A DNA stretch of 64,000 nt, from contig OZ076417.1 in the NCBI GenBank assembly GCA_964187785.1, positions 24,304,001 to 24,368,000 of the forward strand, written 5' to 3'. The DNA comes from Amphiscolops sp. MND2022 (Eukaryota). How positions within the stretch are numbered: position 1 is the stretch's first letter; each line of letters starts with the position of its first letter. This document shows, one piece after another, positions 11,545-43,056 of the stretch. A program made the translations under genes and the position numbers. The notes under the pieces were generated by a model, which was given only the letters and a program-made list of their open reading frames with translations, was not told the origin of the DNA and did not search any database.

Positions 11545-11744
11545 NNNNNNNNNNNNNNNNNNNNNNNNNNNNNNNNNNNNNNNNNNNNNNNNNNNNNNNN
11601 NNNNNNNNNNNNNNNNNNNNNNNNNNNNNNNNNNNNNNNNNNNNNNNNNNNNNNNNNNNNNNNNNNNNNNNNNNNNNNNNNNNNNNNNNNNNNNNNNNNN
11701 NNNNNNNNNNNNNNNNNNNNNNNNNNNNNNNNNNNNNNNNNNNN
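11545..11744. other. Assembly gap (200 N)
   Basis: Run of N bases. Confidence 1.
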
Positions 11745-21240: not shown

Positions 21241-21270
21241 CAGTTTTTCATAATCACGAATTCAACTTAC

Positions 21271-21762
21271 CGCAAACGAAAGATCCGGGAAAATTAAGAC
21301 AGTGTAAATTAGGTGATTGAACGCAGTCGTGGAGGTTCACTAAGCACTCATCAACGTCTAAACACTCTTGAGAGGTCGCTCCTTTTGTGAACCCACTTGA
21401 ACATGTGCATGTGAAACTTCCAACAGTGTTTTGACATACCTCCCGCTCATTTGAACACGAGAAATCACATTCATTGATATCGATACAACTATCATCTGGC
21501 TGCTGTTGTCGAAGAAACCCGGCCTCACAATGGCAAGAAAAATCACCAGCGTGGTTTAAACAAACTTCAAAACTTCCAGGACAATATATTTGTGAGAAAA
21601 GACATTCATCGACATCCGTGCAGGTCACTATACCTTCTCTCCAATTCGTGGATGATTCGTAGCCAGGTGCGCATGAACAATCAAAGCCTTGGTTGATCAC
21701 ATTGACGCAATCACCAGCATTTCCACCACATGTCTCTTCGCGCTGAAGACACTCGTCAACAT
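21271..21762 (-). CDS. Exon encoding four tandem calcium-binding EGF domains (fibrillin/fibulin-like module)
   Basis: 492 nt, phase 1-1, TTTTAG| ... |GTAAGT. Motifs DVDECLQ, DVDECLF...CLNHAGDFSCHCEAGF, DINECDF...CQNTVGSFTCTCSSGF and DVDECLV...CLNFPGSFVC. Confidence 0.9.
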
Positions 21763-24103
21763 CTAAAATCGGAACATGGATTTTTCAGGCTCTTTAGGGC
21801 AGTTTGTAGTACAGGTTTCAGAGGAAAAATACATATCTTGCAGGAGATCTGAAAGAAAGTTCCGTAAAACAATCTGGCAGAGCATATAAATTGCTTCGAT
21901 AATAATTATAATTAATCTTTCTCTTTGCTAACCTGAAGAACAGCTCGACATCTTTGTCGGCAGACCCTTCTGTACAACCGTAACATTGGTTCGACTATTG
22001 TCGGTGCAACCTTGTTTCTGCATTAGCCAAAACTTTGCTTTGGTTCGACATTTTCTATTTTGATACAACAATTTCATTTGCTCTATACCATCAAAAACAC
22101 TTACCGCATCATTTTTGGTTGACTTTTGTATCCACATTTGCTCAAACTTTAGTCAAACTTTTATGGTCCTACTCTATTTTATCGCCCTACTTGCCATAAT
22201 CGCGCTTGTTATACATAAAATTGTCACTGTTTTCATCCCTCACGAAACACTTGCCCTAACTGAAAACATAGTGACAATCGTTCTTTTCGCATATTTTTTT
22301 TCAGTGCTTGTTTTCCAACTGCATTTGATTGAAAACATTATTTGTTTTTACAATTTTCACTAATATTCCCAATGCCTTTCTAGCTCTTATTTTATAAAGC
22401 TCACAGCAACCTCTCGTTTTATATATTTATTTACATGTAAATACATTATTCATGGTGGGTTACAATGTTCTGCTTTAGAAGCACCAAATCGATGCGAATT
22501 TCCAAACTCAAAGGAGCACTTTCATCACTGGGAGGTCCAAGTGTGAATAGGTTCAAAAACCAACTTGCAGATGTGATAGCATTTGCACATCACGTTGAGT
22601 GACACATATTAAGACCAACAAAGTCAAGATTTGTTGATGTTTGAGATTGTTGTGTGGTATTTAAAGTGGGCTGTTAACGACAGTTACTATTTTATCGACT
22701 TTCGTTTCTTTCGAAATGGAATTGACTAGATGGTCTATCTTGAATTTCGAAAACGTAATTGTTACATTGATTTCTGATGAGTTGGATCACGAGATCCAGG
22801 AAAACGAAGGTTTGGGCTTTGACAATGTGAGCGGTTGGAGTATGATTTATGATCACCATCTTTTATGATGTTGATCTTATCTAATCTAATTCCTAACGTT
22901 TTGAGAAGAGCTCTGAGATTGACAGTGTTTGTTATGATATTTATGGATTGAAGTTGAATGAGAGTAAGTTTGAGTGATGTCTAGGACTTTCTTTATTCAA
23001 AACTGCAATCCTTCAGATCAAGTCAATCCCTCATCTGAAAAAAATTGGAACATATACTACAAAACGACTCTTCCAGTCTTCTTAAGTCCTTTTCCAGTCT
23101 TTTGTCTCATTTCTGATCCCACTGATATTGGTTCACATCTACACACTGACATTACCAGACCTCCTCCACCGGACCCGCAAATGGATTAAGTTTGCCTCTT
23201 ACAAAACCTCACCAAAACCATGTATTAGAACACCTCCTAGCTATCAGTGGTCAACCTTCCAGAAGCGATGCAGATTCCTTTACATTTGCTCTATTATACC
23301 ATATAATTCTTCCATCAAACTCAGCCACACATTGAACTACTTCTCTTGAAAATCTATTGGACTGTACCTCCGAAACAACTTCGTCTCGTCCCAGTGGACG
23401 TAGATCTAATCTTAGCTCAGCAAACCCTCAAAATTCTCATTCTTTAGCAAACTCTAACTTACTTCACTATACTTAGACGCCAAGAAGAATATCTCTCTAC
23501 CGACACGTTGTCATCTCAGTTTAATCTTTTTAAATCTCTTTTTCTGATATTACCACAGATTTTCAAAACGTTCTCAGAAAGAAAATGATGAATGCTTCAC
23601 AGTGGAAAACAGTCAAAGTAATCACTAGCTTACACACTTTGATTGTTTTTCACTTTGAAAGTGAATTCCAGTCAAATTGTGTACCAGGTTAAAGTGTAAA
23701 ACAATCAATTTCCGTCTTCGTGTGTGAAGTGGAAACCACTCAAAGTACGTAATTGTAGAGAGTGTAAAGTAGTCAATCGCTGTAGTTTGATCACTACGCG
23801 TAACGCCAAATCACACAGTGTAACGAGCAAAACTCGTAACGCGTATCAGAAATAATAACGCGTTTCTATTGGCTGTTAGTCGAACTAGCAAGATCTTGCT
23901 AGTTCGTTGCGGCATATGTATCGTAATGCTTTCATTACTTCTTGCATTATAACTGAAGAGTTTTTTCTAGATCTCATTTTCCATCATCCCATTTCTCAAA
24001 TTCCAAAAATTTTTCAGCAGATCTTGACCAAAACTCTTGATAGGATGATTTTTCATTTCCTCCAATTCCTGACAGCTGACTACTCTCTAACAAATAGCGA
24101 CAC

Positions 24104-25034
24104 TGTCAGAACGAGTCACGTTCGTGTTGATAACGGTGTTGAGACCGCCACATTCGGTCGTCGGTGATGATATTTTCTCGGTAAGGGCTAACACAATGTT
24201 TGTTAATTCGCTGATTTGTTTATTCATCTCCATGAAACGTTGATCAACGGAATTTGAACTAGAATTTTGTCTAACATTGATTAAATCCCCATTCTCGAAT
24301 TCATTTATCTGGTTTCTAGATAACGTGTTAGGGAAACTATATTCGCTCTCGTTGTCACTATTCTGTTCCATTCCGCTGGAACATGCAACATAACTATCTA
24401 CGTTTTGAGATCTAGTATTGACCATCTTTGAATCTTCGAAAGGAATTGTTGTTTTGAAGGTTTATTGATTTTAATTGGAGATATGAATAATCAAGTTTTG
24501 ACTAAATCAATGAGGTAAGCAACACTACGTTAGGCTGTGTAAAACTTCGTACTGATGGTACTTCAACTCTTGTCGCAATTTTCACTGCAGTTGGTCACGT
24601 GACCGCATTGGCCAATAGTATTGCGCTATTGATTAGGTGTTAATTGGTGCGTACTGCCTGTAGCAACGTAAATGGTGTTTTGTACAAAAGGTAGCACCAA
24701 TATGTTACCATGGTTACATGAATCATCTATCACTTGCGTTGGTTGATACAAATTGCGTCTATGATGGTGCACTACCAACGTTATATATGATACTACATTT
24801 TACTGATGAAATTAAATATGGTGAAAGCACTTGTACGTAGCGTGTAATGAGTAAATGATGTCAACGTTTACAATTCGTTTTTTATTTTAGGAAGTAATAA
24901 TAATGATGGGATAGGCCCGTCATTGTTCAATGGTAATTTATGGTTATTGAAATATCAAGAGTATTACATTTAACTGAGTTTTTTAAATGTTTAGAGTGTT
25001 TTTTATCAGTTTCATTCATGCTTCCGGCATGACA
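24104..25034 (-). repeat. 3' LTR (931 bp)
   Basis: Direct repeat of 38856-39786 with about 10 substitutions counted by eye; preceded on the minus strand by the PPT. Confidence 0.97.
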
Positions 25035-25046
25035 CTCCCCCTCTTT
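25035..25046 (-). other. Polypurine tract
   Basis: Minus strand AAAGAGGGGGAG immediately before the TGTCA LTR start, preceded by a T-rich tract. Confidence 0.9.
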
Positions 25047-26065
25047 AAAAGAAAAAGAGAAGTGCAGGGGTCTTTAGAAATCTGATAGCGGGGAGGTGAG
25101 GTAAATGTAGTAGCTTCACTTATGCAGTAAGTATTGGCTGATTAATCTTTCTACGAGGGTGATTTGGCTGGTGTAGTGACCTCAGTTACTTTTGGACTGT
25201 CCGTTACGGATGATGTCATAGCAACCACGTCGGTAGTGATGAGTTGCTTTGATGGCTTTGAGTACTCGGATTGTTTGGGACCAATTGTTACTTCGATTCG
25301 GTACAGCAATTGAGAGGAAGAGAATGAGTTTAGCGTAACGAGTGAACCACTTCGGTAAATAGTAATTGTAGAGTCGGTGTGGCGAGAGTAGCCACGTCAT
25401 CCAATTGTGCGCTTCGTTTGTAGTAAGAGTTTAAGTAAGAATGAATCTGCCGGAAATTAGTTGAACGTGGCAGCGTGATATAATTACTCGGCTCATTCGG
25501 TAACTGTTCGGAAGTAAATGTAGTGGAACATCGTACGCTTTGTCAACAAATCTTCGTCGGTGCTAAATACGAGAGTAGAAGTAAGCTTGGTTACGGTTGA
25601 TTCAGTTGTTGATTGAAGTTGTTCTTATCCAGTTAGCGATATACCAGGTGGATGTGATTTGACTAGCGGTAAATCGGTTCAGTGAATGCTGCCTGCATCT
25701 AGGTTGTTCTGCGTGGAAAACTCAATTGCAGTGTAGTAAGACTTCCGAATTTGGCATTCTGTTTTCTTGTTTTTCTCTTTTCCCCTTCTTTTCTTTAGTT
25801 TTGAGTAGGATCCAGCGATCTTTAGTATTCGAACGCAACCGTTCTTTGAGTTTGAATTTTTTCCGAGTGAAATATTTGCGAGTAAATTCGGTTGAAGTTT
25901 CTCTTTGTGATATTCCGGTGTCTTGTGAACACAGAGGGTGTGGGTGATCAGACCACATCTCGTATTGTCAAAGACGCTGAAGCCTGGTAGATCGCGAATT
26001 CTACAGTTATAGATCCTTGTTGTCTCGTTCGCCATTGGTTGTTCGTGATTAGTTCCATTACTTGG

Positions 26066-27356
26066 ATGTTATCCCCTGAATTGTCTGAAGAAGAAGTTGC
26101 ATCGATTGTGATAGCCGCGGAAGGCGCGCTAGCTGAGATGTCAAATTTGGAGCAGTTATCTGATGAAGAAGGGTTCCAAGCCTCAGTTGATACGTTGTTG
26201 GAAGGAGAGACACCATCTGTGTGCTGCCAGTTTGCTCAGCGTGTGACTTCGTCCAATGTAGAGGCTGCTACTACTTTGTTGGAGATAGCTCTCTCCAGTG
26301 AAATCCGTAAGTAAATCCGTAGTTATCGTTTTCCTTCCTTTTGGCTACTGAGACGGTCTTTCAACGTGTTTGTTATTGTGTGCTTTGTAGTTAGGGCTAA
26401 GCTCGTCAAGGTAATTGAAATGTTTGTTGCATTGGTATTTGTGTACTGTAGTTACCAACGTCTCGACTAAAAGAACTTCCCGGGAACTATTACCTTGGGT
26501 AGACTTCTGGGCATTGCTAATGGTACTCATAGGTTAGATTGTAACATGTATGTTGCAGAATCTTTGAGTCTGACCGATATCGTCGCCGCTCTACGACGAA
26601 TGCTTCAACAGAATGAGCCTCCAGTAGTTGCATCTCCCGTGAGTGCCGTCGAGACTGGGCTCCGGAATTATGTATACAGCCAAACTGGTAAGTCTGTTCG
26701 CTAACTGATTCGTTATTGTAACGAAGGTGTTGTATGATCGTTACTGCTCGGTACGGCGTGTCGGTTGTTTATGGTTGGCTTCGAGATGCACTCTCGTTTA
26801 CACGATGTGTAGTAATCTGCGTTGTTATCTTTTGGGTGGGATGTTTCCAGGTACGGCGTTGGGTGACTTGTTAACTCTAGACGACGTCGTTGCTGCTATC
26901 GCTCGACTGCAAAAAGAGTTGTCCGGCGTGGTTAAGGCCACCATCGAGTCCACTCTTGGTCAGCTCGGGACAGTTGGGGCAATGGCTGTGGATGAGTTTG
27001 TTGGTCAACTGACTGCAGCAGTTTCCCGTTTAGTCCCTGCTAGTGGCTTGAAAGCAACCGTGCCTGGGGAGGATGCCCCCCTCATCTCGTCATCATCATC
27101 TGTGGGTGTTGCGCCAGTTGAAAATGATGCTCAAAAAGACTTGTCGGTCGTAAGTCGGACAGCATCGATGGTTCCTTCCATTTTTGGAGAGGGAACCGTA
27201 GCAGGATCATTCAGTGCAGGGAAAGTGGCTGCTGCTAAACCTGGTAAGAATCTCAAAAGATCATGGGCGGGGTTTTAGTGAACAATAATGTTAAGATTAT
27301 CAAGAGACAAGACTAGATATATATGTTTTTTTTTGTTTTTTTGTGTGTTTGTTTTT

Positions 27357-27413
<57 letters not shown>

Positions 27414-30400
27414 GACTATTTAACGCGTTGTGTAATTGCGTTCTAGCTCGTGCTCGGAAGATCAAGACGCTCAAGCCGTCTTACTTTGTTTCTGGCGTCG
27501 TGGGGACCTTCGTTGGGTTCCCCCGGAACAAGCGGGTGATTGACGGTTACGCTCGATGTTTACTTTGTCGTGCGGATTTGAGCATTGCAGGACGTGGTCT
27601 GTCATCGTTATGGGATCACTGGAAGGGAGTTGAACACACCCGATTGGAGCAAAAGTACAGGATTATGACACACAGGCCATTGCTGGACAAGTCTTGCAGG
27701 CTAGTATCTGCAGGAGAAGATAGACGGATCAGACGTGCTCGGCTGACCGAACCGCCGGTCTTTCTAGAGTCTGCGCTGAAGTTAACTGTGGAGGAGCGAA
27801 TAGCCATGGAGGAGTCAGAGGCTGAAGAAGGCGCGCGTCCGCAATTGCAGGACGAAAGTGTGAATTACTTGTGGCTGAGTAATTTCGTCTCAAGTTTTCT
27901 GACTGTGACGTCTTTTGATGGGGTGCTCCGGTCGCTGGACTCATGGAGGGACTGTATGGCCAACGAACTTCGTTTTGAGTGCCGTACTCTGACCTACTCT
28001 CGATGTCAGGTAAAAATCAGATTTTGCAGTTATTATTAAGTTGTACTGGTTACTTAGTTAACTTGCTAGTCACGTGGTTGTTATCGGTGCATTGTAACAC
28101 TTTTCGGGTACGGGTGTTGTGTTTGCCTAAGTTTTTCGGTAATTTTATCAGTTTGTTTGATTCTGTTTAGAGTCTCGTGCTGTATGGCTTATACCAGTAT
28201 GCAGTTGAGCAGTTAGACGCACTGGTTGCAGCAAGCTCTTGCATCGGCGTTTGCATCCGTCAGTGCGATTGGCGGTGGTGTGGTGAGCTCCACATCGTTG
28301 GCGTCCATGGCATAACTTCAGTGGTCTTGGCGCTTGTTTCCGGTGGAACTGGATGGGAGAAGCGGCAGTTGAACAACGTCATCCCAGTTCTTGCGTGTCT
28401 CAAAGACAGAACTCAATTGAAGACGATTGCGGTGGAAGGTGATGTACATGTTGGGCGGGCGTTGGCTGCAGTGGTATTGCCTAAGACTCCTCTCGTGGTG
28501 GGGTTGATTACGCAGCGGTCAGTGTTCAACGAGGTACAAAAACAGTTTCTCGCAGAGTTCGCGGGTCTAGATCCCCTCAGTGTCCTGGAATGCTTTCGTG
28601 TGAGGCTGATGTCCGTTGCTCAAGAGGGTTTCTTAGACCGTTTGCCGTTATTGCAGCGGGTTAGTAAAAAAACCCCCTTTTTTTGTTTTTTCTTTTTTTG
28701 TGTGTGTGGGTCATGGCATTTGCGTAGGTTTTCGATTGTTTGGCTCTGGTAAAAAGGTAGATCGTGTTCTTGTTTTGTAGTATATTCGACTTGGTGGAGA
28801 TGACGTGTCCCAACTTGCACTGGTTTGCGCAGAAGTGGTGGACTACTGGAATGATTTGGCGCTGTACTTTGGTACTCATAAACCGGGAGTGACGTCGGAA
28901 CTGCGTCCGATTACTCCTCTAGAAAGTCAGGTGTTCGAGGATGCACTGATTCGGCCTCGTTTTGCTGTTCTGCGCTCAGTGTTAGATTTGAGTGAGTATG
29001 GGTTTATATGCTGTTGATCGGATACTCATTTGAGTACACGTGTAGCTGTAATTTTGTATGTTGAATATGGTCCAAAATTAGGTTAAGTGGGGACGTATGG
29101 AGCTAAAGTTCTGCGTGTACAGTTTGGTGTGTAACCCCCTGGTGTTGTGTTTTAGTGGTTAAGCACTGCCCTAGTTTGTGTAGACGTGGACGTGATTATG
29201 GCATTGTCTCGGAACGGGAACTGGCTCACCTTTTGCGTGGACTAATGAAGTTTATCTATCCGGCTCACAGTATTCCAGCGGAGTACGAGATCGCTGCCTT
29301 GTTGAAAAATGTGGACCGGGAGTATGCAGACGTAGACTCTAACATGTACAGATTACATTTCGGGCAGTACTTCCGTTTCGACATCAGCACTCAACTGCCT
29401 TTCTTTTACAAATCTGTCCAGAAAATGTTAGTCGGTATATGTCGTGGATTGAGCGGATTGTGGCAGCGTACGTGGCCCCAGCATTTGAGCTTGACTCCAT
29501 TTGATCCGGTTCTCATTCATAGTGGGTCGGATGATCGCTGTGTCGACTCCTTAGTAGCAACTTGTGCTGTGTTGACTGCTCATGGGCTTGTGGGACTAGA
29601 TGATGGCGGAGTAGTTCAGCAACAGTATCGCGAAGTCACCCAATTTTTCAAGAGACGCTGGGCCTCTACTGCGGAAGAACTACCAGTAGTGGAGGACATT
29701 TTCGCGTTGTGGATGTCGTATCCTCACTGGGAGCGATGCGAACAATTGCGGCAGGTCATCGATCTGGCTTTCAGTGCAGTGGCCACTAGTTCGTACCGGG
29801 CGGATTTTGTCGATGACGTCGGCGGAGCTTTGGATCCTGATGCACTGGCTTCAAGTGTGCATTTCGTCCGGAGTTGGTTCAGTCAGTCTTTTGTGGGAAA
29901 ATCGCGTCGTCAACTACGTGGTTTGTTGCGTGTCATTGAGACAACCGACATGCAAGTGTCTCGTTTAAACGATAGCGTTCGCGCTAAACCGTGGGATCAA
30001 CTCCTCAAAGTCGGACTGGATCAAACGTTGTCCTTGTGTGTATCCATGTTGGGCAATGGTCCTGATACTGCAGTCGTTCCGGTAGTGGATGAGTATCGTT
30101 CGACAGTACTTGCGCAGTTGAATGTTATGGTGGTAATGGCAACGAGCCCTACTCGTGTAGCGACGGGTTTTAAAGCGATGCCGACCAGTACAGACGCGAA
30201 ATCCAAACGGCCCCGCAGTCAGTCTGATGTGAAATTGAAGACTCCCAAGAAGACGCCCAACGTGGCTACGGTTGGAACCTCTAAATCTACTGGGCGAACG
30301 AGAGGCGTTGTGGTCAGTCGGCGAGGTCATAGTGCAGCGGTGAAGTCTGGAAAAGGACGGCGAACTGGCGGGAAACCGCATGCATCTAAGAGACTTGTAT

Positions 30401-30516
30401 TATCTACGGCGGCAAGTGAGGCTTCAGATCATGGTAGTCAATCGTCCAGTGACGATGTGCCATTGTCTACTACTAAGCGGACGAAGCAGGTCATCCGTGA
30501 TTCATCGGATGAATAG
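26066..30516 (+). CDS. Spliced antisense gene inside the retrotransposon; 1159-aa hAT-transposase-like protein, apparently catalytically inactive
   Basis: Exons 26066-26306, 26391-26410, 26452-26498, 26533-26687, 26851-27243, 27447-28009, 28171-28659, 28781-28991 and 29156-30516. All introns are GT-AG, all phases are compatible, and the 3480 nt total is open. CX2CX16HX5H finger at 27557-27637; YWNDLALYF, PFDP and FALW...LRQVIDLAFSAVATSS motifs. Exons 2-4 are less certain than exons 5-9. Confidence 0.82.
27359..27410. repeat. (TA)26 microsatellite in intron 5 of the antisense gene
   Basis: Read directly. Confidence 0.95.
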
Positions 30517-32636
30517 TTGTGAACTAAACATGCTGTTGAGCTTGTATTTGTCAGTTTGTCGCTTGCTGAAATGATTTGTACCACTTTGAATGTTTTGCTT
30601 CTGAACGTGTAGTTTGTATACCTTTTTTGTTGATTTATCACGGGAGCGTTTTTATGTGTATCGGGAGTCACAAGGTGCTAGTTGCGTTACCCGGTAACCT
30701 CCTTTCCTACTTGTTGAACTTGTGGTTATTTTACATGTTTTAGAACGTTGAGTTTGTTTTTCAGTTTTCATTTTGATGATTTTTGTTTCATTCTGCATAC
30801 TTGTTGTGTTGTTCTTTCTTCATGATTTGTAGTATTCAGTTGTTGTTGGTCCATTACCTTTGACTAAGTTTTGTGTTACTTCCAATGCCCTTATTACAGT
30901 TGAATTTACATGTTGCCTACGTTATACAAATTTTTTACCCTAATTTGCATGTAAACTTAGGTAGCTGGTCTCAAAATGTTGGAGCGATAGACTCAGCTTT
31001 GCAAGTCATTCAAGTTCTAGTAGAGTAGTCGCCGAGGTAACTACCATTGAAAAGCTCTCACTCACCAAGTGCCATCCTCGTGTCAGCGTTGTTCATGATT
31101 ATAGCTTACATATGACAGAGATGGAAACTTGGTGGGTGGGTGGAGTCGCTCAACTCCTACAGATGATTTGAACTTTTGAGTAGCTGCTTTTATAGTGCTC
31201 TAGTTGGTTATTTGACAGGTGTTTACTAACTTAGGTGTCATTCTAATCTGTCAGTTCATGTCGAGTTTTACATATGTTCATTTATCATGTAGCGTTATTC
31301 TTGACGTCGTCATCGTTGATGTGTCTCATGCGACGTCATCACTCGTGTCGTGTGTCAAGTGTTAACGTCAATCTTAATGGTAGATGGGTTTCCCCATAGC
31401 CATTAAACTTTTTGACAAGGGATGGTGAGTTCCATCCCTTGTTACGAATCTTCGGTGATGTAGTGAATAAGCCTGCATGTTTTTGAATAAGCCTACGCAT
31501 CAACAGTAGGAACGAAAGTGTCATGACCTGAATTCGATGTAAAGATGATGACTGCATTTTACTGTCCTAGGAAAAGTTTTATATGTTGTTCGTTGGATTG
31601 GGAAGGTTATTTGCCGTCGCAAAAACCCATACAAAACTAACACCGAATCCACTTGCTAAAGAGCAAGCTTCATCTGAATGTTTGTACAACCACACAGACG
31701 CGCATTTGACGACGCACCCACACAGCCGAACCACATCATGATTTCCTGGGCGGAAGTGCGGGACTAGATTTTGGCGGCGTAACTTAACTAAGGCAGCTAT
31801 CTCTTTTGCATGTTCGGTTGTGTGCTGTTACTTTTGCTAAATTGGTTTATTACTGTCGTCATAAAGTTGGTAAGTACAGAATTGCAAAGCAATTCCTTTG
31901 AAAGCGTGTGGTTGGGATTTTCTGTGAATTGTATAAATTAGCAACTCGTTTGCATGTGTTTTACATGTACTTAATAATTTCCGGTTAACGTGATGTGGTG
32001 TGTATGACTGCATTGCATGTATTTACTTTTGCGCTCAGCTGTCTCGGTAGAGAGTAACAATATACTCTGCCGGTAAACTCAAGTATGTCGGACAGTGAGT
32101 ATCAGTCGTCACTGAATGGCGTAAAGTAATCCAAACAATTTAAAGGTATGATTGATGCATGTGGTGATGTCGACTACATTCAATTAATTGCATGTATATT
32201 TTTTCTTTATTTATGGTGAAAATGACGTGGTACGTGTGGCAGCGTTAGGTGTTTCTTTTCGTTCATACTGCTGGTGGAATAGGGTGAGACGTTGAATAAC
32301 ACGTAGCGACGCAGTGTGTGGGACTGCGTAACGGCTTTCTCGTCTGTCGTTCGTTAGCCGGTTAAGGGCGGAAATATGCTCTGGCCGGTAATTTTGAAAA
32401 CTGATGACAGTGAGTGTTAGACGTTATTTATGGTATCATTCAGTATTGTTTTTCTTCGTGTCTACTTGATCTAATTTACATGTATGTGTTACGAGATTCT
32501 CTCTTTTTTGTTTTTTGTAGAGAGTGTAGGACACTCCCATTTACTTTTGCATGTGATATCACTTCTCGTGCCGATACGAGGCGAAGCCTACGAGTTGTCA
32601 GCAGGAGAGAACACAGATTTTATGTTTGCATGCGTT

Positions 32637-35600
32637 TTAGTCGGCGGATCTGTCTTGCATGAATTTTAGCAGAGCCGGTTTGACTCGGAGTTCGTGGACT
32701 AAGAAGTCTTGGTAGGTTTTCGGTTGCGGTTCGGTTCGGAGGTTGTACCGTGTTGCGTTGTTACGCGACGTTGTGTGGTCATGCTCATTATGAACTGTCG
32801 TTGTATGTTCAGTCACAGGTTCGTTTGTTTCAGTATCAGGTTCGTTGTTGGTGTCGTAATGAACAACTGAATTGTCAGGCGGTTGCTCGCAGGTTTCAGG
32901 TGAGCTCTCAGGAATTGGTTGCGTCAGCGTATGATCGTTCAATTTCCGTACATGCTCATAATAGATAATGCCGTGTTCATTATTGATTTCTTCTTGATCG
33001 ATTGTTTCCGGTGCCGGTTCCGCATACAAATGCTGAGGCATGTGGTCATTGAAGAGCGCTTGATCATCGGCCGCATCGGGGTCAGCGAACAAGCGATTTG
33101 AGTCTTCTTCAATGTCCGGTATTGGTGCGTTCGGTGTGAAAGGACGTAGTCGCAACCTATGCACGCACTGTGTTCGGAAGGTTCCGACCTTCCTGATTAT
33201 GTAGTTAAAGTTTGTCAGTACTTTAATTACTTTGAAGGGACCTTCCCATTTGAAGTCATGGAAGTTAATCTTGTCGGACTGCGTTGTGAGTTTAGGATTA
33301 AGCAGAAATGTGTAGTCGTTGACCTTTAATGGTAACGCTTGGGCTTTACGGTCGTAGTACTTTTTGTACTTGTGGTATGCTTGCAGTATGTTATCATTGA
33401 CTTGTTGGTATTTGCCGTTCACCTGGTCAACTAATCTTGTTATATCAGTTTCCGTGGTTTAACATTTCAGAGGGTTACCGAATTTGAGGTCTAACGCGTT
33501 AAACGGAACTCTGCCGTGGAAGACTTCGCTCGGAGTGCACTTGAGTGATTGATGGTAGGTTGTGTTATGAGCCATTACTGCAAGATTAACGTACCTGTCC
33601 CATTGGGGGGAGTCGACGGAAATGTTAATCTTCAGAATCGGTTTCAGTCTTTGGTGGGAACGCTCCACCATCCCTATGGTTTGGGCATGCTTTACAGTAG
33701 CGTGATCGATTTTGATTTCGGCAGTTTTCATGATTTCGGTCATGATGTTGGATGTGAAAGCCGTGCCTTTGTCGGTGATAATTGTCTTCGGGACGTAGGC
33801 GTGTTGGGTGAATATTTGCATGACCGCTTTTACAACCGATTTAGTGTCTGGTTTCCGTATAGGTACAAATACCGTGAGAAGTAGTCGCACGCCCTCAGGA
33901 TGTGCGTATATCCGTTTGAGTTAGGTAGTTCACCTACTAAATCGATTTCCAGTACGTCTTCCGGGCCGTTACAGGGGTCGTAGATTTTTTCCAGAGGAGG
34001 CGTTAGTCGTCTTGGGTTAACAGGTTTTGCTTTGATGCACTCAATACAATTACTTACGTACTTTGACACGTGTTCACTCAGGCTTGGTATGTAGTAACGC
34101 TTGCAGAGTTCTACCAACATTTTTGATGCCCCAGGGTGTCCCTGCATGGGGTCGCCATGCATTGTCCTGATTATGGGCATGGTAGTTTCTGGAGGAACTA
34201 CGAATTGTTTAAGTAGAATTACGGGAGTGTTATCAAAAACGTTCCTGTACAGTACCTTGTTGACTACTTCAAGTCTTTTTTTGTTTTTTACCAGTTTTTG
34301 AAAAAAGGAGCTAGTAAAGTTAACGTGGTTTGGTAGTGGTTCGTTGTCGACTAAAACGCGGACCATTTTTTGGACGTCTTGGTTACCTAACTGATCTTGG
34401 ACGATTTGTGAATCCCCTTGCGGGCATACCTGATTTACCGGGTTAAGGTGGTGACGTCTGGTAAACCTCGTCAGTATGCTGGAAGGGGTGTCTCCTGCCA
34501 GAACAGGTTCAAGGTGTCGGCTGATGATCTGAATCATCTTGAGACGTTCGTCGTCATGTGTTTGAAGGTTATTCGCCATTGAGTTTAGTAGAGTTCGCAT
34601 CTTGGTGAAGTCGTCTGCTGGACCGGTGGTTTCAGACTGATGTGTAGTGGGTATCGCTGCATCGGGTTGCTGTTGGTCTGGGTCGTAGTCTTCTTCGTCC
34701 TCGTCCTGTTTTGGGGTTTTGGCCGCAAGATCTATTTCGATGTGGTGGACTGGAATCTGGTCATTCAATTTCAAGTGAATCCTGTCTTCAGGGTTAATGT
34801 CTAATCGAGACAGGTAATCCGCCGCTGGGTTCTCGACTCCAGGGACGTGGGCGAGAACAAAGTCAAATTGAAGTGCTTGGTCACACTGGTTCCATAGTTT
34901 GGGTGGTATTCGTTTCGACTGGAAGAAGCGGGTCAGAGCCTTGTTATCTGTCATCACAATTGTGGGTTTTTTGACACCCCACAGTATGTGAGCAAATTCG
35001 TCGAAGGCGAAGTGCATTGCGAGGAATTCTTTAGCATACATGGTCAATGACATTTGACCTTCCGTGAATCGTTGCGAGCCGAATGCTACAGGGGCGTACG
35101 TCTTCTTCTGTCCATCATTGGCTTCGGTGTACTCCTCAATGAGGAGCACGTACCCTGCTGCGTGTTCACTCGCATCACACATGATGACCAGTTGTTTGTC
35201 TGGTAGTGGTAGTCGCAGAGATAGTTTTGCAGCTCGTGCCAGGTTCTGATTGATATCACAAATTGCGTCCTTGTGAACCTGCGCCAGGGTGAACTTGATG
35301 TCTTTCTGTAGTAGTTTGTACAGAGGTACAAGTTTTTCTGCCAACATCGGTATGTACTGTCTGTAGAATTGTACAAATCCGATGTAGCGTTGAAGTGATT
35401 TGACTGACGTTGGTGTGTTCAGGTTGTTGAGGAATTTGTCGATCTTGTCCTCAAGTGGCGCAATCCCTTTGGTAGTGATGCTTCTACCCAAGAACTCGAT
35501 CTTCGGGTGACCAAAGGCGCATTTTGACATCGACAGCTTTAGACCTGCCTTCTGAATCTGCTGGAAAACTGCTTCGATGTTGATTATCAGTTCGTCCACA

Positions 35601-37594
35601 TTGTTGGCAGCGATCCCAATGTCGTCAACGTATTAGGCACATTTGTCTGCTTTTACCAGTGCATCTAAGTACTCTCGAATTGTACTGTTGAATGCAGACA
35701 AAGACCTATTCAACCCTTGCGCGAGTCGGAGGTAAGCAAAGGTTCTGCTGCCAAAATTGAATGCCAGAAGTTGTATTGATTGTTCGTCGGCCATTTGGAA
35801 TCAGTGGTAAGCTTGCGAACAGTCAAGCTTGCAAAAGTACCTTTTGCCAGCCATATGCTGGGCTGCATCGGCAATGGTCGTTACTGGGTGGTTGTGGTTG
35901 TTGTAGTCATTTTTGAGGAGGTGGTTGATCCGCCTCAAGTCGACTAATATCCGAAGTTTCCCGTTAGGTTTTCGTTGTGCGAAAATTGGGGAGGAATATT
36001 TGCTGTATGGTAACGTCGTGATGATCCCGTACTCCTGCATCAGTGCGAGTTCGACCAGCAGATCATCTTCCAGATTGGTTGGAGTAGGTAGACTCTGGGC
36101 GTACACGGGATCATCGTGTTTTGGGGTCAGCTTGATCTTGAAGTCGGTGTTGATGCCGATATCAAGACGATGTCTAGCAAATATCGTGTGATATTTGACG
36201 AGCAGTTCTTCGATCCTCTGTTGCTCGTGCTCAGTGAGGATTGAGTCGTCCCAGCTGAAATTTTTGAGGAACGTTTGGCGTTGTTCGTCATCGCATGTCG
36301 GGTTGAGTTTTTCAGCTTCTCGGAGTTTGATGAGTTCGTCGTAGATACGTCTTTCTATTTTATTCAGCTTGTCAGGATCGTCACATGTTTCGGGAGTCGG
36401 GTACCATCTATTATCATTTGTGGCACTGGGATCCTGGAACAGTTGGTTGATCACATTAGCCGCTTCATCAGGGAATTTAGTGATCAACGCCAGCTGCTCG
36501 TTGGTCATTGGCTGGATGTTTCTGGCTTGGTTTGGCGTAAGTATTCGGAAGACTGCGATTGTGCTGTTCTGAGGTATTGTAACTGCGTGGTCCATGTGGT
36601 TGGTAATTTGGACGTGTGTCTGTTGGTCCTTGATTTCAGACATTGATGGTGACACTAGCAATTCGGTTTTTCGTTCAAAGGTTGGGAACGCCTCTATTGT
36701 GCCTCTCACTATTCCGATGTCCTTGTCCGTTGTAACAGTCACAAATATTTGTTGTCCGGGCGAGATGGTTGTTTTTTGGGTTGTTCTGAGTTCCAACATC
36801 TGCAGTGTGAATTTCCCGTTTGGCGGTTTTAGTTGGAGGGTTATTTCTGGGAATCGCACAATGTTATTTGCAAGGTCTAGCGTGACAGAGTATTTTTTAA
36901 AGAAGGACATTCCGATGAGGATGTTTCCCATTGTTGGTAGGATCATGAATGTCTCTTCGAATATTTTTCCCCCAATGAAAAATCGAAGAAGCACTTGTTT
37001 TCTCACCGGAACGATATTTCCGTTGGCTATTTGGACTTTAAAGTCCGGTGCTGGATATTCTTCCAACTGGGCTGCTGAGTGGGCTTGTAGGATTCGACGT
37101 AGCTCGTTCTCAGACATCGCGCTCTGGATTGCTCCAGTGTCCAGTAGCCCTTGATTTTCATACTCACGGAATTGAAGAGGGACGTAGAGCATATTGTTTC
37201 TTCTGTCTAACTGGAGTGTAGCGCTTAATGGTCTGATGTTTGTTGGCTTCGGTTGGTGCCCCTGTTTGGTATTGTCATCCAGTTCATTCGGTTTTTGTTG
37301 TGGGTTTCTAGTTCTGGTCGGGTTGACACTCTCTCGTTGGTGTGGCCTAGCTGCAGTCTCTTTCGGAATGCAGCCCTTCGTTGTACAATTAGGGTTGTCG
37401 TCTATGAGAGGGAGTATGTGGTAGTTGTTTGTCGAGACTTTGCGTACATAGTATTTCGTTGATAGTTTAGTCTGTTTGTCAGGACGCTGCCAACATCCTG
37501 TCGTTGTAGTTTTCGAGTAGTAGTGAGTTTGAGTTGGTTTTTTGGTGCGCGCACTTTCTGTTTGGTTGGACTGAGGATGACGTGGTATTACAAG
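32637..37594 (-). pseudogene. pol: Gypsy pol (protease, RT, RNase H, integrase), disrupted
   Basis: Motifs LLDTGA; SSPIF..RKPNGKLRILVDLRRIN; LDCSQAYH; YVDD (35621-35632); CDASEHAAG, TDNKAL, NPAADYLSR; H..PMQGH...CIEC; IDLVG, TDKGTAF, GMVERSH; WEGPF. In-frame stops at 35801-35803, 35633-35635 and 33459-33461, and a frameshift at about 33865. Confidence 0.95.
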
Positions 37595-39177
37595 TTTTTT
37601 GAATTCGTATCATATTCATCGTTGTAATCCATGTCGTAGCAGTCGTTGGTTTCTTCTGGTTGGGTGGTCTGGCTTGTCGCTTGCGTGACTTGGTAGGTCG
37701 GTTGGTAGTTGTTTTGTGACTGTTTGAATTCACGGCGGAACTCTCGGTTTTCATTGGTGGATTGTTTGTCATATGGTACATTTCGGTAAGCCGATGCACC
37801 TGGTACCCTGTCTCTGCAATCCCGTGCTGAATGTCCGATCCTGCCACAAATTTGGCATACTAATTTGGAGTTGTATCGTGGTTTTTCGGTTTCTTGTTGT
37901 TGGGCATTGTTGTTTCCAGGTTGGGGACGTTGTTGTGATTTCTTCGTTATTCCGTTGGCTTCGTCCCTGAGGCGTTTACGGCATTCGATCCACTTGTGGC
38001 CCAGTATGTTGCAGTATCTGCAATTTCCTTCGAATCTTCGTTTGACTTCTCTTGTTGGGTTCTTCTCGGTGTTGTTTGGGTTGTGGGCTGGCTGAGCGTT
38101 GTTTTGCTTTGGTTGGTAGTTGTAGACCTGGTTAAGTGGCTGCATATCTGAGGTGCCGGGGAGCAGTTGTGCATATTGGCAACGGCGTTGTACAAACGTC
38201 TTGATTTCTTCAACCTTGGCATCGTGTTTGCCTGCCATGGCAAGTTCATTCTGAATCTGGATTGGTAGTTTGGCAAACAAGAATGTTTCGGCTATGTCAT
38301 TGGCTTTATCTCCGTATGCTTGTTTGGCAAGTTTCTTGTATCTAGTTAGGAAATCGGCAAATGATTCCTTTGTGGGGTCATACCTCATCTGATCGAATTT
38401 GTACTTCGATACTTCTTTGAGGTCTTCTTTCGCATACTCCTTGGTGAAAGCTTGCAGGACGTCTTGGAGTGTCGTTTCTGTCGTGATTTTTAGTGTCTGC
38501 CAGAATTCTATGGCTTCGTCTCTAAGCAGGCTTTGAAAATAGTTTAGCTTCTGCTCTTCTGTTAATTTGTTCATGTGTGGGCGGAGGTGGTTCTTCAGTA
38601 GAGGTTCGAATTCGTTGTACTTCTCTCGGTTTCCGCGGAAGAGAGGTACTTGAGTTTGGAGGATTTTGGGCTGTATTACTCCATCGGTCATTGTTGTTCG
38701 TAGGTTGTGTATTTCGGTCAATACATCATCCATCTGAGGTTCGTTGGTGGGTGGTGCACGATCTCTGTTTTGGTGAGTTGCAGGGGTTGGGAGGGTCCTG
38801 CGTGGTTGTTGGATATTTGGAGTCGGATTTGGGTTCGTGGAGACTCCTGTGACCATGTCAGAACGAGTCACGTTCGTGTTGATAACGGTGTTGAGACCGC
38901 CACATTCGGTCGTCGGTGATGATATTTTCTTGGTAAGGGCTAACACAATGTTTGTTAATTCGCTGATTTGTTTATTCATCTCCATGAAACGTTGATCAAC
39001 GGAATTTGAACTAGAATTTTGTCTAACATTGATTAAATCCCCATTCTCGAATTCATTTATCTGGTTTCTAGATAACGTGTTAGGGAAACTATATTCGCTC
39101 TCGTTGTCACTATTCTGTTCCATTCCGCTGGAACATGCAGCATAACTATCTACGTTTTGAGATCTAGTATTGACCAT
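37588..39177 (-). CDS. gag: Gag (529 aa), intact, two CCHC zinc knuckles
   Basis: CRYCNILGHKWIEC and CQICGRIGHSARDC; capsid-like core (PLFRGNREKY...YFQSLLRDEAIEFW). The start codon lies inside the 5' LTR. Confidence 0.95.
   Translation of the reverse strand: MVNTRSQNVDSYAACSSGMEQNSDNESEYSFPNTLSRNQINEFENGDLINVRQNSSSNSVDQRFMEMNKQISELTNIVLALTKKISSPTTECGGLNTVINTNVTRSDMVTGVSTNPNPTPNIQQPRRTLPTPATHQNRDRAPPTNEPQMDDVLTEIHNLRTTMTDGVIQPKILQTQVPLFRGNREKYNEFEPLLKNHLRPHMNKLTEEQKLNYFQSLLRDEAIEFWQTLKITTETTLQDVLQAFTKEYAKEDLKEVSKYKFDQMRYDPTKESFADFLTRYKKLAKQAYGDKANDIAETFLFAKLPIQIQNELAMAGKHDAKVEEIKTFVQRRCQYAQLLPGTSDMQPLNQVYNYQPKQNNAQPAHNPNNTEKNPTREVKRRFEGNCRYCNILGHKWIECRKRLRDEANGITKKSQQRPQPGNNNAQQQETEKPRYNSKLVCQICGRIGHSARDCRDRVPGASAYRNVPYDKQSTNENREFRREFKQSQNNYQPTYQVTQATSQTTQPEETNDCYDMDYNDEYDTNSKNL
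37594..37600 (-). promoter_or_regulatory. -1 ribosomal frameshift slippery heptamer A AAA AAC
   Basis: Minus strand TCA AAA AAC TTG TAA ends gag; the -1 frame (AAA AAA CTT GTA ATA CCA...) is open through to the protease. Confidence 0.78.
38844..38855 (-). other. Primer-binding site TGGTCACAGGAG
   Basis: Starts with TGG directly after the 5' LTR end (…TGACA); priming tRNA not assigned. Confidence 0.75.
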
Positions 39178-39786
39178 CTTTGAATCTTCGAAAGGAATTG
39201 TTGTTTTGAAGGTTTATTGATTTTAATTGCAGATATGAATAATCAAGTTTTGACTAAATCAATGAGGTAAGCAACACTACGTTAGGCTGTGTAAAACTTC
39301 GTACTGATGGTACTTCAACTCTTGTCGCAATTTTCACTGCAGTTGGTCACGTGACCGCATTGGCCAATAGTATTGCGCTATTGATTAGGTGTTAATTGGT
39401 GCGTCCTGCTGGTAGCAACGTAAATGGTGTTTTGTACAAAAGGTAGCACCAATATGTTACCATGGTTACATGAATCATCTATCACTTGCGTTGGTTGATA
39501 CAAATTGCGTCTTTGATGGTGCACTACCAACGTTATATATGATACTACATTTTACTGATGAAATTAAATATGGTGAAAGCACTTGTACGTAGTGTGTAAT
39601 GAGTAAATGATGTCAATGTTTACAATTCGTTTTTTATTTTAGGAAGTAATAATATTGATGGGATAGGCCCGTCATTGTTCAATGGTAATTTATGGTTATT
39701 GAAATATCAAGAGTATTACATTTAACTGAGTTTTTTAAATGTTTAGAGTGTTTTTTATCAGTTTCATTCATGCTTCCGGCATGACA
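38856..39786 (-). repeat. 5' LTR (931 bp)
   Basis: Direct repeat of 24104-25034; AATAAA on the minus strand at 39213-39218; followed by the PBS. Confidence 0.97.
39345..39368. promoter_or_regulatory. Candidate LTR promoter: palindromic E-box GGTCACGTGACC next to palindromic ATTGGCCAAT
   Basis: Both motifs read directly; also present at 24593-24616 and in the third LTR copy. Confidence 0.5.
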
Positions 39787-40512
39787 GACACACTCCTAGC
39801 GAATCCTCGTGGATATCCTTGCTTTTATTACGTCGCTACTCACTTTCACCAATCATCTTCAACTCAACTAAGAAATCACTACACGTTTCCATATTCTTCA
39901 CCCACAACCAATTCATGCACACACTAGAGTTAATTTTCAATCACACCCTCACCCGTGTTTAACTTCGAAAACAGATATTTGTTAGATATTTGTTAGCAAA
40001 TTTCCATCTTTCGCCTTTCACAGAGCTTCATAACTTTTGTCATCATTCTAACATAACTTACATACAACTTTCATTCTTTCATAATCCATCCTACACTCGC
40101 CTTCTAGATTAAAACGACTCGGTTTCTCGTTATACCCTAACCTCTCCATTTAGTGACAAATCGAAAAACGATGTAATGATTCTGAATTTCCTAATAATTC
40201 TCCTATATCTGATCTATAAAACTCTCTCAATGACACTTCCAAACAACACAAATTCTGCCATTTGAAAACTTTGAGTTCAACTTTGTGTGCGAGCCCCTCT
40301 CCCTTCAGATAACACTCGTGTTTTAGTTGATTAGTTGATGTAGACGTTCATGCAAAAGCAAAATGTCTCACAGTTTGGACATGAAAGAAAAACGTTTATG
40401 GAACAAAAGGGAAAAGTTTGTGCAAAAATGATTCATTTCATCATTGCTGTGATGGAAAGGATTATAATCGAAATACTATAGAACCTCCTCGTATCTTAGG
40501 CCCTACTGTATC

Positions 40513-43056
40513 TTTGGTGCGCGCACTTTCTGTTTGGTTGGACTGAGGATGACGTGGCATTACAAGTTTTTTGAATTCGTATCATATTCATCGTTGTAAT
40601 CCATGTCGTAGCAGTCGTTGGTTTCTTCTGGTTGGGTGGTCTGGCTTGTCGTTTGCGTGACTTGGTAGGTCGGTTGGTAGTTGTTTTGTGACTGTTTGAA
40701 TTCACGGCGGAACTCTCGGTTTTCATTGGTGGATTGTTTGTCATATGGTACATTTCGGTAAGCCGATGCACCTGGTACTCTGTCTCTGCAATCCCGTGCT
40801 GAATGTCCGATCCTGCCACAAATTTGGCATACTAATTTGGAGTTGTATCGTGGTTTTTCGGTTTCTTGTTGTTGGGCATTGTTGTTTCCAGGTTGGGGAC
40901 GTTGTTGTGATTTCTTCGTTATTCCGTTGGCTTCGTCCCTGAGGCGTTTACGGCATTCGATCCACTTGTGGCCCAGTATGTTGCAGTATCTGCAATTTCC
41001 TTCGAATCTTCGTTTGACTTCTCTTGTTGGGTTCTTCTCGGTGTTGTTTGGGTTGTGGGCTGGCTGAGCGTTGTTTTGCTTTGGTTGGTAGTTGTAGACC
41101 TGGTTAAGTGGCTGCATATCTGAGGTGCCGGGGAGCAGTTGTGCATATTGGCAACGGCGTTGTACAAACGTCTTGATTTCTTCAACCTTGGCATCGTGTT
41201 TGCCTGCCATGGCAAGTTCATTCTGAATCTGGATTGGTAGTTTGGCAAACAAGAATGTTTCGGCTATGTCATTGGCTTTATCTCCGTATGCTTGTTTGGC
41301 AAGTTTCTTGTATCTAGTTAGGAAATCGGCAAATGATTCCTTTGTGGGGTCATACCTCATCTGATCGAATTTGTACTTCGATACTTCTTTGAGGTCTTCT
41401 TTCGCATACTCCTTGGTGAAAGCTTGCAGGACGTCTTGGAGTGTCGTTTCTGTCGTGATTTTTAGTGTCTGCCAGAATTCTATGGCTTCGTCTCTAAGCA
41501 GGCTTTGAAAATAGTTTAGCTTCTGCTTCTTCTGTTAATAGATCAACGGAATTTGAACTAGAATTTTGTCTAACATTGATTAAATCCCCATTCTCGAATT
41601 CATTTATCTGGTTTCTAGATAACGTGTTAGGGAAACTATATTCGCTCTCGTTGTCTCTATTCTGTTCCATTCCGCTGGAACATGCAGCATAACTATCTAC
41701 GTTTTGAGATCTAGTATTGACCATCTTTGAATCTTCGAAAGGAATTGTTGTTTTGAAGGTTTATTGATTTTAATTGCAGATATGAATAATCAAGTTTTGA
41801 CTAAATCAATGAGGTAAGCAACACTACGTTAGGCTGTGTAAAACTTCGTACTGATGGTACTTCAACTCTTGTCGCAATTTTCACTGCAGTTGGTCACGTG
41901 ACCGCATTGGCCAATAGTATTGCGCTATTGATTAGGTGTTAATTGGTGCGTCCTGCTGGTAGCAACGTAAATGGTGTTTTGTACAAAAGGTAGCACCAAT
42001 ATGTTACCATGGTTACATGAATCATCTATCACTTGCGTTGGTTGATACAAATTGCGTCTATGATGGTGCACTACCAACGTTATATATGATACTACATTTT
42101 ACTGATGAAATTAAATATGGTGAAAGCACTTGTACGTAGCGTGTAATGAGTAAATGATGTCAACGTTTACAATTCGTTTTTTATTTTAGGAAGTAATAAT
42201 AATGATGGGATAGGCCCGTCATTGTTCAATGGTAATTTATGGTTATTGAAATATCAAGAGTATTACATTTAACTGAGTTTTTTAAATGTTTAGAGTGTTT
42301 TTTATCAGTTTCATTCATGCTTTCGGCATGACAGACACACTCCTAGCGAATCCTCGTGGATATCCTTGCTTTTATTACGTCGCTACTCACTTTCACCAAT
42401 CATCTTCAACTCAACTAAGAAATCACTACACGTTTCCATATTCTTCACCCACAACCAATTCATGCACACACTAGAGTTAATTTTCAATCACACCCTCACC
42501 CCTGTTTAACTTCGAAAACAGATATTTGTTAGATATTTGTTAGCAAATTTCCATCTTTCGCCTTTCACAGAGCTTCATAACTTTTGTCATCATTCTAACA
42601 TAACTTACATACAACTTTCATTCTTTCATAATCCATCCTACACTCGCCTTCTAGATTAAAACGACTCGGTTTCTCGTTATACCCTAACCTCTCCATTTAG
42701 TGACAAATCGAAAAACGATGTAATGATTCTGAATTTCCTAATAATTCTCCTATATCTGATCTATAAAACTCTCTCAATGACAGTTCCAAAAAACACAAAT
42801 TCTGCCATTTGAAAACTTTGAGTTCAACTTTGTGTGCGAGCCCCTCTCCCTTCAGATAACACTCGTGTTTTAGTTGATTAGTTGATGTAGACGTTCATGC
42901 AAAAGCAAAATGTCTCACAGTTTGGACATGAAAGAAAAACGTTTATGGAACAAAAGGGAAAAGTTTGTGCAAAAATGATTCATTTCATCATTGCTGTGAT
43001 GGAAAGGATTATAATCGAAATACTATAGAACCTCCTCGTATCTTAGGCCCTACTGT
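40513..43056 (-). repeat. Tandem duplicate of 37541-40509 (gag + LTR + 723 bp flank) with an internal deletion removing the PBS and U5 end
   Basis: 40513-41539 matches 37541-38566; 41541-42333 matches 38994-39786; 42334-43056 matches 39787-40509. Scattered substitutions and a 1-bp insertion at about 41528. Confidence 0.92.

Follow-up and report, generated by a model that had tools for sequence, protein, structure and literature searches.

Antisense accessory genes in retroelements bearing long terminal repeats (LTRs) are known from plant elements and from a few retroviruses. In the plant Tat/Retand, Grande, and RIRE2 elements, the open reading frame (ORF) designated aORF-3R is located in antisense orientation between pol and the 3′ LTR, is conserved throughout the lineage, and is presumed to encode a DNA-binding protein or nuclear regulator with a TRP28 (Transposase_28) domain (PMC11963269, PMC7264820). 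These plant genes are described as ORFs, and the words "intron" and "introns" are absent from both reports (PMC11963269, PMC7264820). The antisense gene HBZ of human T-cell leukemia virus type 1 (HTLV-1) is situated between the final sense gene and the 3′ LTR; the integrated copy expresses it, and its product is a nuclear, regulatory protein, nuclear antisense proteins being known from maize Grande as well as from HTLV-1 (PMC11963269). The LTR elements of bdelloid rotifers carry additional genes (ORF3s) of env-like, GDSL esterase, or DEDDy exonuclease type, which follow gag and pol and are shared modularly between lineages; introns are unmentioned in that report, where "antisense" is used for small RNAs only (PMC5408684). 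Here, we analyzed a 64,000-nucleotide (nt) stretch of contig OZ076417.1 (the window, to which coordinates refer unless another locus is named), which contains a Ty3/Gypsy-type LTR retrotransposon carrying, in antisense orientation to gag-pol, a gene with seven predicted exons. What sets it apart from the known cases is the non-plant Ty3/Gypsy clade and the six-intron gene. Our literature search, of incomplete coverage, turned up no LTR retrotransposon outside plants that has a conserved antisense gene of several exons, which is an absence of evidence.

Structure and conservation of the antisense gene

According to our analysis, the gene lies on the plus strand, in the interval from the pol end (32637) to the polypurine tract (PPT) of an element whose gag-pol is encoded on the minus strand, with its ATG at 26066 and its stop at 30516. 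These are exactly the limits given in the first-pass annotation, a reading of the bare sequence which had also reported five plus-strand ORFs in this interval, and five long ORFs are indeed present between the pol end and the PPT. That annotation had joined them through eight GT-AG introns into one phase-compatible frame of 1159 amino acids (aa). We likewise obtained a single open frame bounded by canonical sites, but with six GT-AG introns, seven exons, and 1128 codons instead, and it is this seven-exon model that homology backs. The donor sequences are, in order, GTAAGT, GTAAGT, GTAAGA, GTAAAA, GTTAGT, and GTGAGT, and at every acceptor a pyrimidine-rich run is found upstream of the AG. Nine loci, L001 to L009, were fetched for comparison with the window, of which L001 to L004 belong to assembly ERZ25074608 and L005 and L006 to a second assembly, ERZ26859043. 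The parts of the gene are the following.

26066 to 26306, plus strand: exon 1, with the start ATG and the acidic N-terminal region; ATG in the same place in L004, L008, and L009; donor GTAAGT
26559 to 26687, plus strand: exon 2, with an AG acceptor and a GTAAGT donor, phase 1; 129 nt also in L004, L008, and L009
26851 to 27243, plus strand: exon 3, from its splice sites and homology in other loci
27447 to 28009, plus strand: exon 4, the most conserved, with a CCHH finger and a basic helical region; 121 homologues, 54 to 98% identity
27557 to 27637, plus strand: predicted BED-like zinc finger, C-x2-C-x16-H-x5-H (CLLC...HWKGVEH); ligands C37, C40, H57, and H63 in exon-4 numbering
28171 to 28659, plus strand: exon 5, domain with a predicted RNase H-like fold and no conserved catalytic triad, from structure modeling and Foldseek
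28781 to 28991, plus strand: exon 6, with the AEVVDYWNDLALYF block; 43 to 97% identity in L001 to L004, L008, and L009, recognizable in L007
29156 to 30516, plus strand: exon 7, with the helical C-terminal region, the basic Ser/Thr-rich tail, and the stop codon; a 453-aa ORF
30145 to 30513, plus strand: basic disordered tail, isoelectric point (pI) 11.4, with KRPR/KTPKK, GRRTGG, and an acidic SSDE end

Intron 3 contains a (TA)n microsatellite (27359 to 27411) and is the most length-variable intron among the copies (199, 334, and 110 nt). A similar amphipathic motif opens each of exons 1 to 3 (26066 to 27243; EEVASIVIAAEGAL, LTDIVAALRRML, and LDDVVAAIARLQ), and this may point to duplicated exons in the acidic N-terminal part.

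The spliced seven-exon model is supported by homology. The tblastn matches in the other loci stop at its junctions, and AG/GT occurs at the same codon positions and in the same phases in L001 to L004, L008, and L009, as well as at exons 5 and 7 in L007; the exon 4 donor CAG/GT is kept in L001 to L004 and L009. In L002, intron 4 is an in-frame, stop-free insert between the same residues. Intron identity is near the shuffled baseline. One could suppose that the ORFs encode separate small proteins, or occur by chance, with coincidental GT-AG sites and no splicing, and prokaryote-style gene callers do list them singly. We deem this explanation highly improbable, since the exons lie in different frames, the internal exons have no conserved start codons, homology ends at AG/GT sites of conserved phase in seven other loci, including one from another species, polypyrimidine tracts precede each AG, and exon lengths are essentially constant across the copies while intron lengths drift.

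The same gene is widespread. Exon 7 alone identified 61 homologue clusters with about 590 member sequences at 36 to 97% identity, and an exhaustive HMMER profile search with this exon returned 206 representatives at 50% clustering; all homologues are unnamed ENA or JGI predictions, and a scan of JGI metagenomes with the exon-7 alignment found no relatives. In L001 to L004, the gene is located within the LTR pair, where it lies downstream of gag-pol and in antisense orientation to it. In L009, which comes from the same assembly as L001 to L004, and in L005 and L006, where the last exon is 22 to 27% identical, the gene likewise has an antisense orientation and a position downstream of a related gag-pol. 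Since L002, L003, and L004 have their own 5-bp target site duplications (TSDs; ATTAC, CCATG, and ATCTC, respectively), they are independent insertions of diverged relatives. The gag-pol sequences of the gene-bearing relatives are 35 to 98% identical, and the gene is present in diverged lineages and in at least two other assemblies. It is therefore integral to the element and not a nested one-off insertion, and the sharing of the gene by other copies, on which the first-pass annotation had let its interpretation depend, is what we observed.

The opposite explanation would be a single event in which this one copy received, by insertion or transduction, a host gene or a different transposon that has no role for the element. 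The pol gene of the window copy is dead, so the copy could be regarded as a decaying carcass that collects insertions. The evidence leaves this explanation a negligible probability: the gene has the same place and orientation in seven of the loci, with independent LTRs and TSDs, hundreds of member sequences exist, the gene is under strong constraint (see below), no terminal inverted repeats (TIRs) or extra TSD surround it, and segmental duplicates of one locus are excluded by the different TSDs and flanks.

The two parts of the element do not share the same history. Between L003 and the window, pol is 83 to 89% identical and the accessory exons only 31 to 62%, and L009 and L002 share 86 to 90% in pol and 47 to 63% in the accessory exons. 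These incongruent histories suggest recombination between element lineages, by which the accessory module and gag-pol would be exchanged.

Two further loci have an arrangement of their own. L007 (1 to 1738), a contig of a metagenome from marine biofilms (SAMN08714533; PMC6355793), encodes homologues of exons 5 to 7 and is too short to include gag-pol; no finger exon is detectable upstream of its exon 5, where an acidic low-complexity ORF (1060 to 1230) is found instead. In L008, the accessory gene is immediately followed, on its own strand, by a different element with reverse transcriptase (RT), RNase H, and integrase (L008, 11737 to 14210, plus strand), and since the expected antisense gag-pol is missing, this copy is nested or rearranged.

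Selection was estimated by the Nei-Gojobori method as the ratio of nonsynonymous to synonymous substitutions (dN/dS). L008 and L009 were used for the selection and intron comparisons because the divergence between the window and L004 is uninformative. In the main comparison, window versus L008 (dS 0.95, 1126 codons), the overall dN/dS was 0.11, below the value of 1 that the first-pass annotation had proposed as a test. By region, it was 0.05 in exon 4, 0.085 in exons 5 and 6, 0.083 in the core of exon 7, 0.22 in the N-terminal exons, and 0.18 in the tail, and it was 0.26 versus L004. All exons are under purifying selection.

The carrier element and its surroundings

The carrier is a complete insertion of a Ty3/Gypsy-type element on the minus strand (24104 to 39786; 15,683 bp). 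The matching LTRs and TSD claimed for it were confirmed: both LTRs measure 931 bp, are 98.9% identical to each other, and have the termini TGTCA...TGACA, and the 5-bp TSD GTGTC was read directly at both element ends. Its features are as follows.

24099 to 24103, no strand: TSD GTGTC (in minus-strand writing) on the 3′ side of the element, matching 39787 to 39791
24104 to 25034, minus strand: 3′ LTR, 98.9% identical to 38856 to 39786
25035 to 25046, minus strand: PPT AAAGAGGGGGAG, adjoining the 3′ LTR
25047 to 26065, plus strand: spacer of about 1 kb from the 3′ LTR to the antisense ATG, presumed by its position to hold the antisense promoter and 5′ untranslated region
32637 to 37348, minus strand: pol (protease, RT, RNase H, and integrase), broken, from Pfam
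37588 to 39177, minus strand: gag, 529 aa, from Pfam DUF1759 and CCHC
38843 to 38855, minus strand: sequence TGGTCACAGGAGT resembling a primer binding site (PBS), directly after the 5′ LTR and inside the gag ORF
38856 to 39786, minus strand: 5′ LTR, from comparison of the LTR pair, with its ends read
39787 to 39791, no strand: TSD GTGTC on the 5′ side, read directly

The PPT is identical in L004, and purine-rich variants are found in L003, L002, and L001. The PBS-like sequence is a 13-mer starting with TGG, kept as TGGTGACAGGAGT in L002, L003, and L004, and such a TGG-initiated 13-mer is common to four lineages; a tRNA scan for its partner found no tRNA genes in the window or in the fetched loci, and an Rfam search of the window gave no match. 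The spacer at 25047 to 26065 is 3.8% divergent from L004, matching the rest of the element. In the minus-strand proteins, Pfam identified zf-CCHC, gag-asp_proteas, RT_RNaseH, Integrase_H2C2, rve, and Integrase_p58_C, and RVT_1 was matched in the intact relatives L002 and L003. The element thus presents the LTRs with a TSD, the PBS and PPT, the CCHC-type gag, and the pol order protease-RT-RNase H-integrase that define Ty3/Gypsy elements.

The 529-aa gag is intact, with DUF1759 and CCHC knuckles. The pol gene of the window copy, by comparison with the intact 1564-aa pol of L003, contains two in-frame stops in the RT region, one of which closely precedes the YVDD box, as well as a frameshift near 33865 in the integrase region and another break near 33440. 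Despite the broken pol, both gag and the 1128-aa antisense gene are intact in this copy. The gag ATG is located about 320 bp inside the 5′ LTR, as it is in L004 and L002, and therefore the 3′ LTR holds a 112-aa ORF corresponding to the gag N terminus (24087 to 24425). A tandem duplication (37541 to 40509 and 40513 to 43056; 99.4 to 99.6% identity) comprises the gag C terminus, the 5′ LTR, and a 723-bp stretch of the flank upstream. Its second copy has a 428-bp deletion, and the duplication is a segmental one that took place after the insertion.

In the surroundings, a host exon encoding three calcium-binding EGF domains (EGF_CA, E value of 2.6e-26) is located at 21254 to 21700 on the minus strand, about 2.4 kb from the element, which probably resides within or close to a metazoan gene of the fibrillin- or Notch-like type. 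On the other side, an endonuclease/exonuclease/phosphatase ORF of the APE type (45309 to 46307, minus strand) adjoins a weak coiled-coil ORF (46585 to 47235, minus strand), and the pair is probably a fragment of a non-LTR retrotransposon. Between 10001 and 16000, on both sides of a gap of 200 N (11545 to 11744), the GC skew takes strongly negative values (-0.23 to -0.47), and a weak pol-like match at 13029 to 13313 on the plus strand (32% to residues 605 to 700 of the L003 pol) suggests another decayed retroelement.

Predicted protein and the question of a transposase origin

Sequence and fold searches were run on single-exon translations and their homologues. Residues 1 to 254 are acidic (pI 4.2). 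The finger ligands C37, C40, H57, and H63 are nearly invariant in 44 exon-4 sequences, and zf-BED is the sole recurrent Pfam family, matched by 10 of 44 exon-4 homologues, in all cases below the threshold (best E value of 0.0061, 17 bits versus a cutoff of 20.6); the window's own exon 4 has no Pfam zf-BED match. No Pfam family was matched significantly in the plus-strand ORFs of the window or in the homologues of exons 7, 5, and 4. The AlphaFold2 model of exon 5, built from a 23-sequence alignment, has an RNase H-like topology with the order a0-b1-b2-b3-a1-b4-a2-b5-a3-a4 (predicted local distance difference test [pLDDT] score of 81, predicted template modeling [pTM] score of 0.66). The model of exon 7 (24 sequences) is all-helical and poor (pLDDT of 50), and because of this its Foldseek matches were disregarded. 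The tail is basic and Ser/Thr-rich, with a conserved GRRTGG and a conserved acidic SSDE end, and to judge from its composition, its KRPR/KTPKK motifs may act as a nuclear localization signal. Searches of the PDB with sequences and profiles of exons 7, 5, and 4 returned nothing relevant.

The first-pass annotation had derived the protein from a hAT DNA transposase, on account of motifs which are all present (ARCLLC...WDHWKGVEH, RFECRTLT, AEVVDYWNDLALYF, LSLTPFDP, and WERCEQLRQVIDLAFSAVATSS). A domesticated hAT transposase of the ZNF862/Tip100 type would consist of a BED finger, an RNase H-like core with an all-alpha insertion, and a C-terminal dimerization block. Part of this layout is recovered in our analysis, as the order of a BED-like finger, an RNase H-like domain, and about 450 residues predicted to be helical fits the hAT arrangement. 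Some diverged lineages moreover hold D/E-G at the end of beta-1 (TDGS, FDGN, and VEGA), which we take to resemble the hAT "DxW" block. The catalytic aspartates expected in such a core are, by contrast, unconserved, and the C-terminal TSS block read as a dimerization region is not conserved within the family.

Profile searches did not recover hAT. No DUF4371, Dimer_Tnp_hAT, or other hAT family was found by Pfam in any plus-strand ORF or in the homologues (24 of exon 7, 20 of exon 5, and 44 of exon 4), with permissive ceilings (E values of up to 1 for the 24 exon-7 homologues and up to 10 for the 20 exon-5 homologues, as well as for four exon-7 homologues from the other two assemblies). PDB profile searches with the exon 7, 5, and 4 alignments likewise returned neither Hermes nor any other hAT chain, so the derivation is not borne out at this level. 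Between 25035 and 32636, inverted repeats are limited to the (TA)n tract and one short palindrome, with no TIRs and no 8-bp TSD. A nested DNA transposon was considered as a candidate and rejected since no TIRs flank the gene.

The structural comparison with Hermes gave a mixed outcome. No match to the exon 5 model was found by Foldseek in the PDB at an E value of ≤1e-3. The top neighbors are dominated by RNase H-like folds, namely, endonuclease V, poxvirus and RuvC-type resolvases, Pelota/eRF1, HIV integrase cores, herpesvirus terminase nuclease, the C-terminal half of UvrC, and Ty3 RNase H, and a search of BFVD returned generic RNase H-like folds only. Among the PDB matches, Hermes (4d1q) ranks fifth and has the highest TM-score (0.44) and the highest probability (0.98), with an alignment that spans the full length (176 columns); its E value (7.9e-3) is not significant, its TM-score is below 0.5, and endonuclease V, the resolvases, Pelota, and HIV integrase score alike. 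The exon 7 model is too poor for superposition of the insertion domain. We rejected an inverted duplication of the RNase H or integrase of the element itself as the source of the exon 5 domain (hhalign probability of 0.06).

In the exon 5 family, the positions at which the DDE acidic residues are expected are variable (D/V/A/G/N at position 33; D/E/N/H at position 91), E89 after beta-4 is nearly invariant, and the alignment of exon 7 shows no conserved third acidic residue or glutamate. Because the acidic positions vary and exon 7 lacks such a glutamate, an active hAT enzyme is excluded, an argument which does not extend to a decayed derivative. We therefore think that the layout is plausibly transposase-like and compatible with hAT, membership in which is unproven. 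That the protein derives from a DDE transposase, possibly of the hAT type, is a plausible hypothesis to which we would give somewhat less than even weight, and we hold the same tentative view of a domesticated ZNF862/Tip100-like hAT transposase.

A stronger version would make the element a class I/class II chimera, whose accessory protein would be active as a DDE nuclease or transposase and would give it a second, DNA-level mode of mobility or integration. An RNase H-like fold beside a DNA-binding finger, together with the nearly invariant E89, could be read in this way. The first and second acidic positions vary in the family, however, no third one was identified, no TIRs are present, and the examined insertions all end in LTRs with 5-bp TSDs, as expected from the element's own integrase. 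An active transposase is thus unlikely, and a chimera that depends on one seems to us very improbable.

Proposed role and comparison with known systems

Taken as a whole, the data are best explained by an integral accessory gene of a Ty3/Gypsy clade with a nuclear, noncatalytic DNA-binding product, a reading in which we have good though not complete confidence. The gene, between pol and the PPT, would be read convergently to gag-pol; its antisense promoter would lie in the 1-kb spacer or in the 3′ LTR of integrated copies, and the six introns would be spliced out of the antisense transcript. In the genomic RNA, to which they are antisense, these introns read CT...AC and, according to established retrotransposon biology, would stay unspliced before reverse transcription. 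Because they escape splicing in this way, each new copy would inherit the full exon-intron structure. The predicted 1128-aa product would comprise an acidic N terminus, a BED-like CCHH finger, an RNase H-like domain with decayed catalytic acidic residues, an extended helical part, and a basic tail similar to a nuclear localization signal, and this layout hints at a DDE transposase, possibly a hAT-like one, as its ancestor. Such a protein most likely is a noncatalytic nuclear DNA-binding accessory factor which may act in trans on element copies, candidate roles being the control of element transcription or silencing and the tethering of integration.

Several points weigh against this explanation. 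Splicing, promoter, and expression are deduced from comparative sequence only, DNA binding and nuclear localization from a sub-threshold finger match and from composition, and the biological role from the analogy to two nuclear antisense proteins, that of maize Grande and HBZ of HTLV-1 (PMC11963269). L007, the most distant contig, has no detectable finger exon upstream of exon 5, and the finger may thus not be universal in the family. The window copy is nonautonomous at best, since its own pol is broken. Moreover, the window and L004, the closest pair, are about 3% diverged in exons and introns equally, and single inserted copies therefore decay neutrally, with selection being seen only between lineages.

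A bolder formulation, which we consider possible and hold with still less assurance than the DDE origin itself, is that an animal Ty3/Gypsy clade of marine-invertebrate type has permanently recruited a DDE-derived protein, with a BED-like finger and a decayed RNase H-like core, as a seven-exon antisense gene, preserved during retrotransposition by the antisense position of its introns and exchanged by recombination, whose product is a nuclear factor that directs integration sites or counters silencing. If this were true, a class I element would be employing a class II-derived DNA-binding module.

We think that the locus matters in several respects. It indicates that a split gene of the eukaryotic style can be a stable passenger of an LTR retrotransposon as long as it is antisense, and the locus is a natural counterpart to engineered retrotransposition reporters, which use the same antisense-intron logic. 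It offers a tractable case for asking what antisense accessory proteins do, a possible example of the recruitment of a transposase-like DNA-binding module by a retrotransposon, and evidence for recombination of accessory module and gag-pol between lineages. The locus also calls for caution in annotation, as standard pipelines would call such genes host genes or split them into "hypothetical proteins."

Compared with hAT transposases and their derivatives (Hermes, the ZBED family, and ZNF862-type proteins), the predicted protein has the same order of a BED-type finger, an RNase H-like core, and a helical C-terminal part, but it shows no profile similarity to them and no detectable Dimer_Tnp_hAT, its triad is unconserved, and its gene is located inside an LTR element with neither TIRs nor an 8-bp TSD. 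The elements of bdelloid rotifers are alike in their captured extra genes and in the incongruence of their modules, whereas the gene described here is antisense and multi-exon.

HBZ is a small bZIP protein whose gene has one intron and its first exon in the 3′ LTR. HBZ of HTLV-1 and APH-2 of HTLV-2, both deltaretroviruses, are similar to our gene in position and logic as antisense, spliced genes, the spliced structure being in our case predicted from sequence. The protein encoded here is about five times larger, is unrelated in sequence, and combines a BED-like finger with an RNase H-like domain, and its gene has six introns; Pfam found no bZIP match in the exons or in the exon-7 homologues. 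The closest parallel in position, orientation, and lineage-wide conservation is the aORF of plant Tat/Retand elements. Their TRP28 domain (PF04195) was found by Pfam neither in the window exons nor in their homologues, and the plant genes reside in flowering plants, whereas the gene described here has six conserved introns and 1128 codons and belongs to an element in a host that looks metazoan and marine, as judged from the neighboring EGF exon and the marine-biofilm relative.

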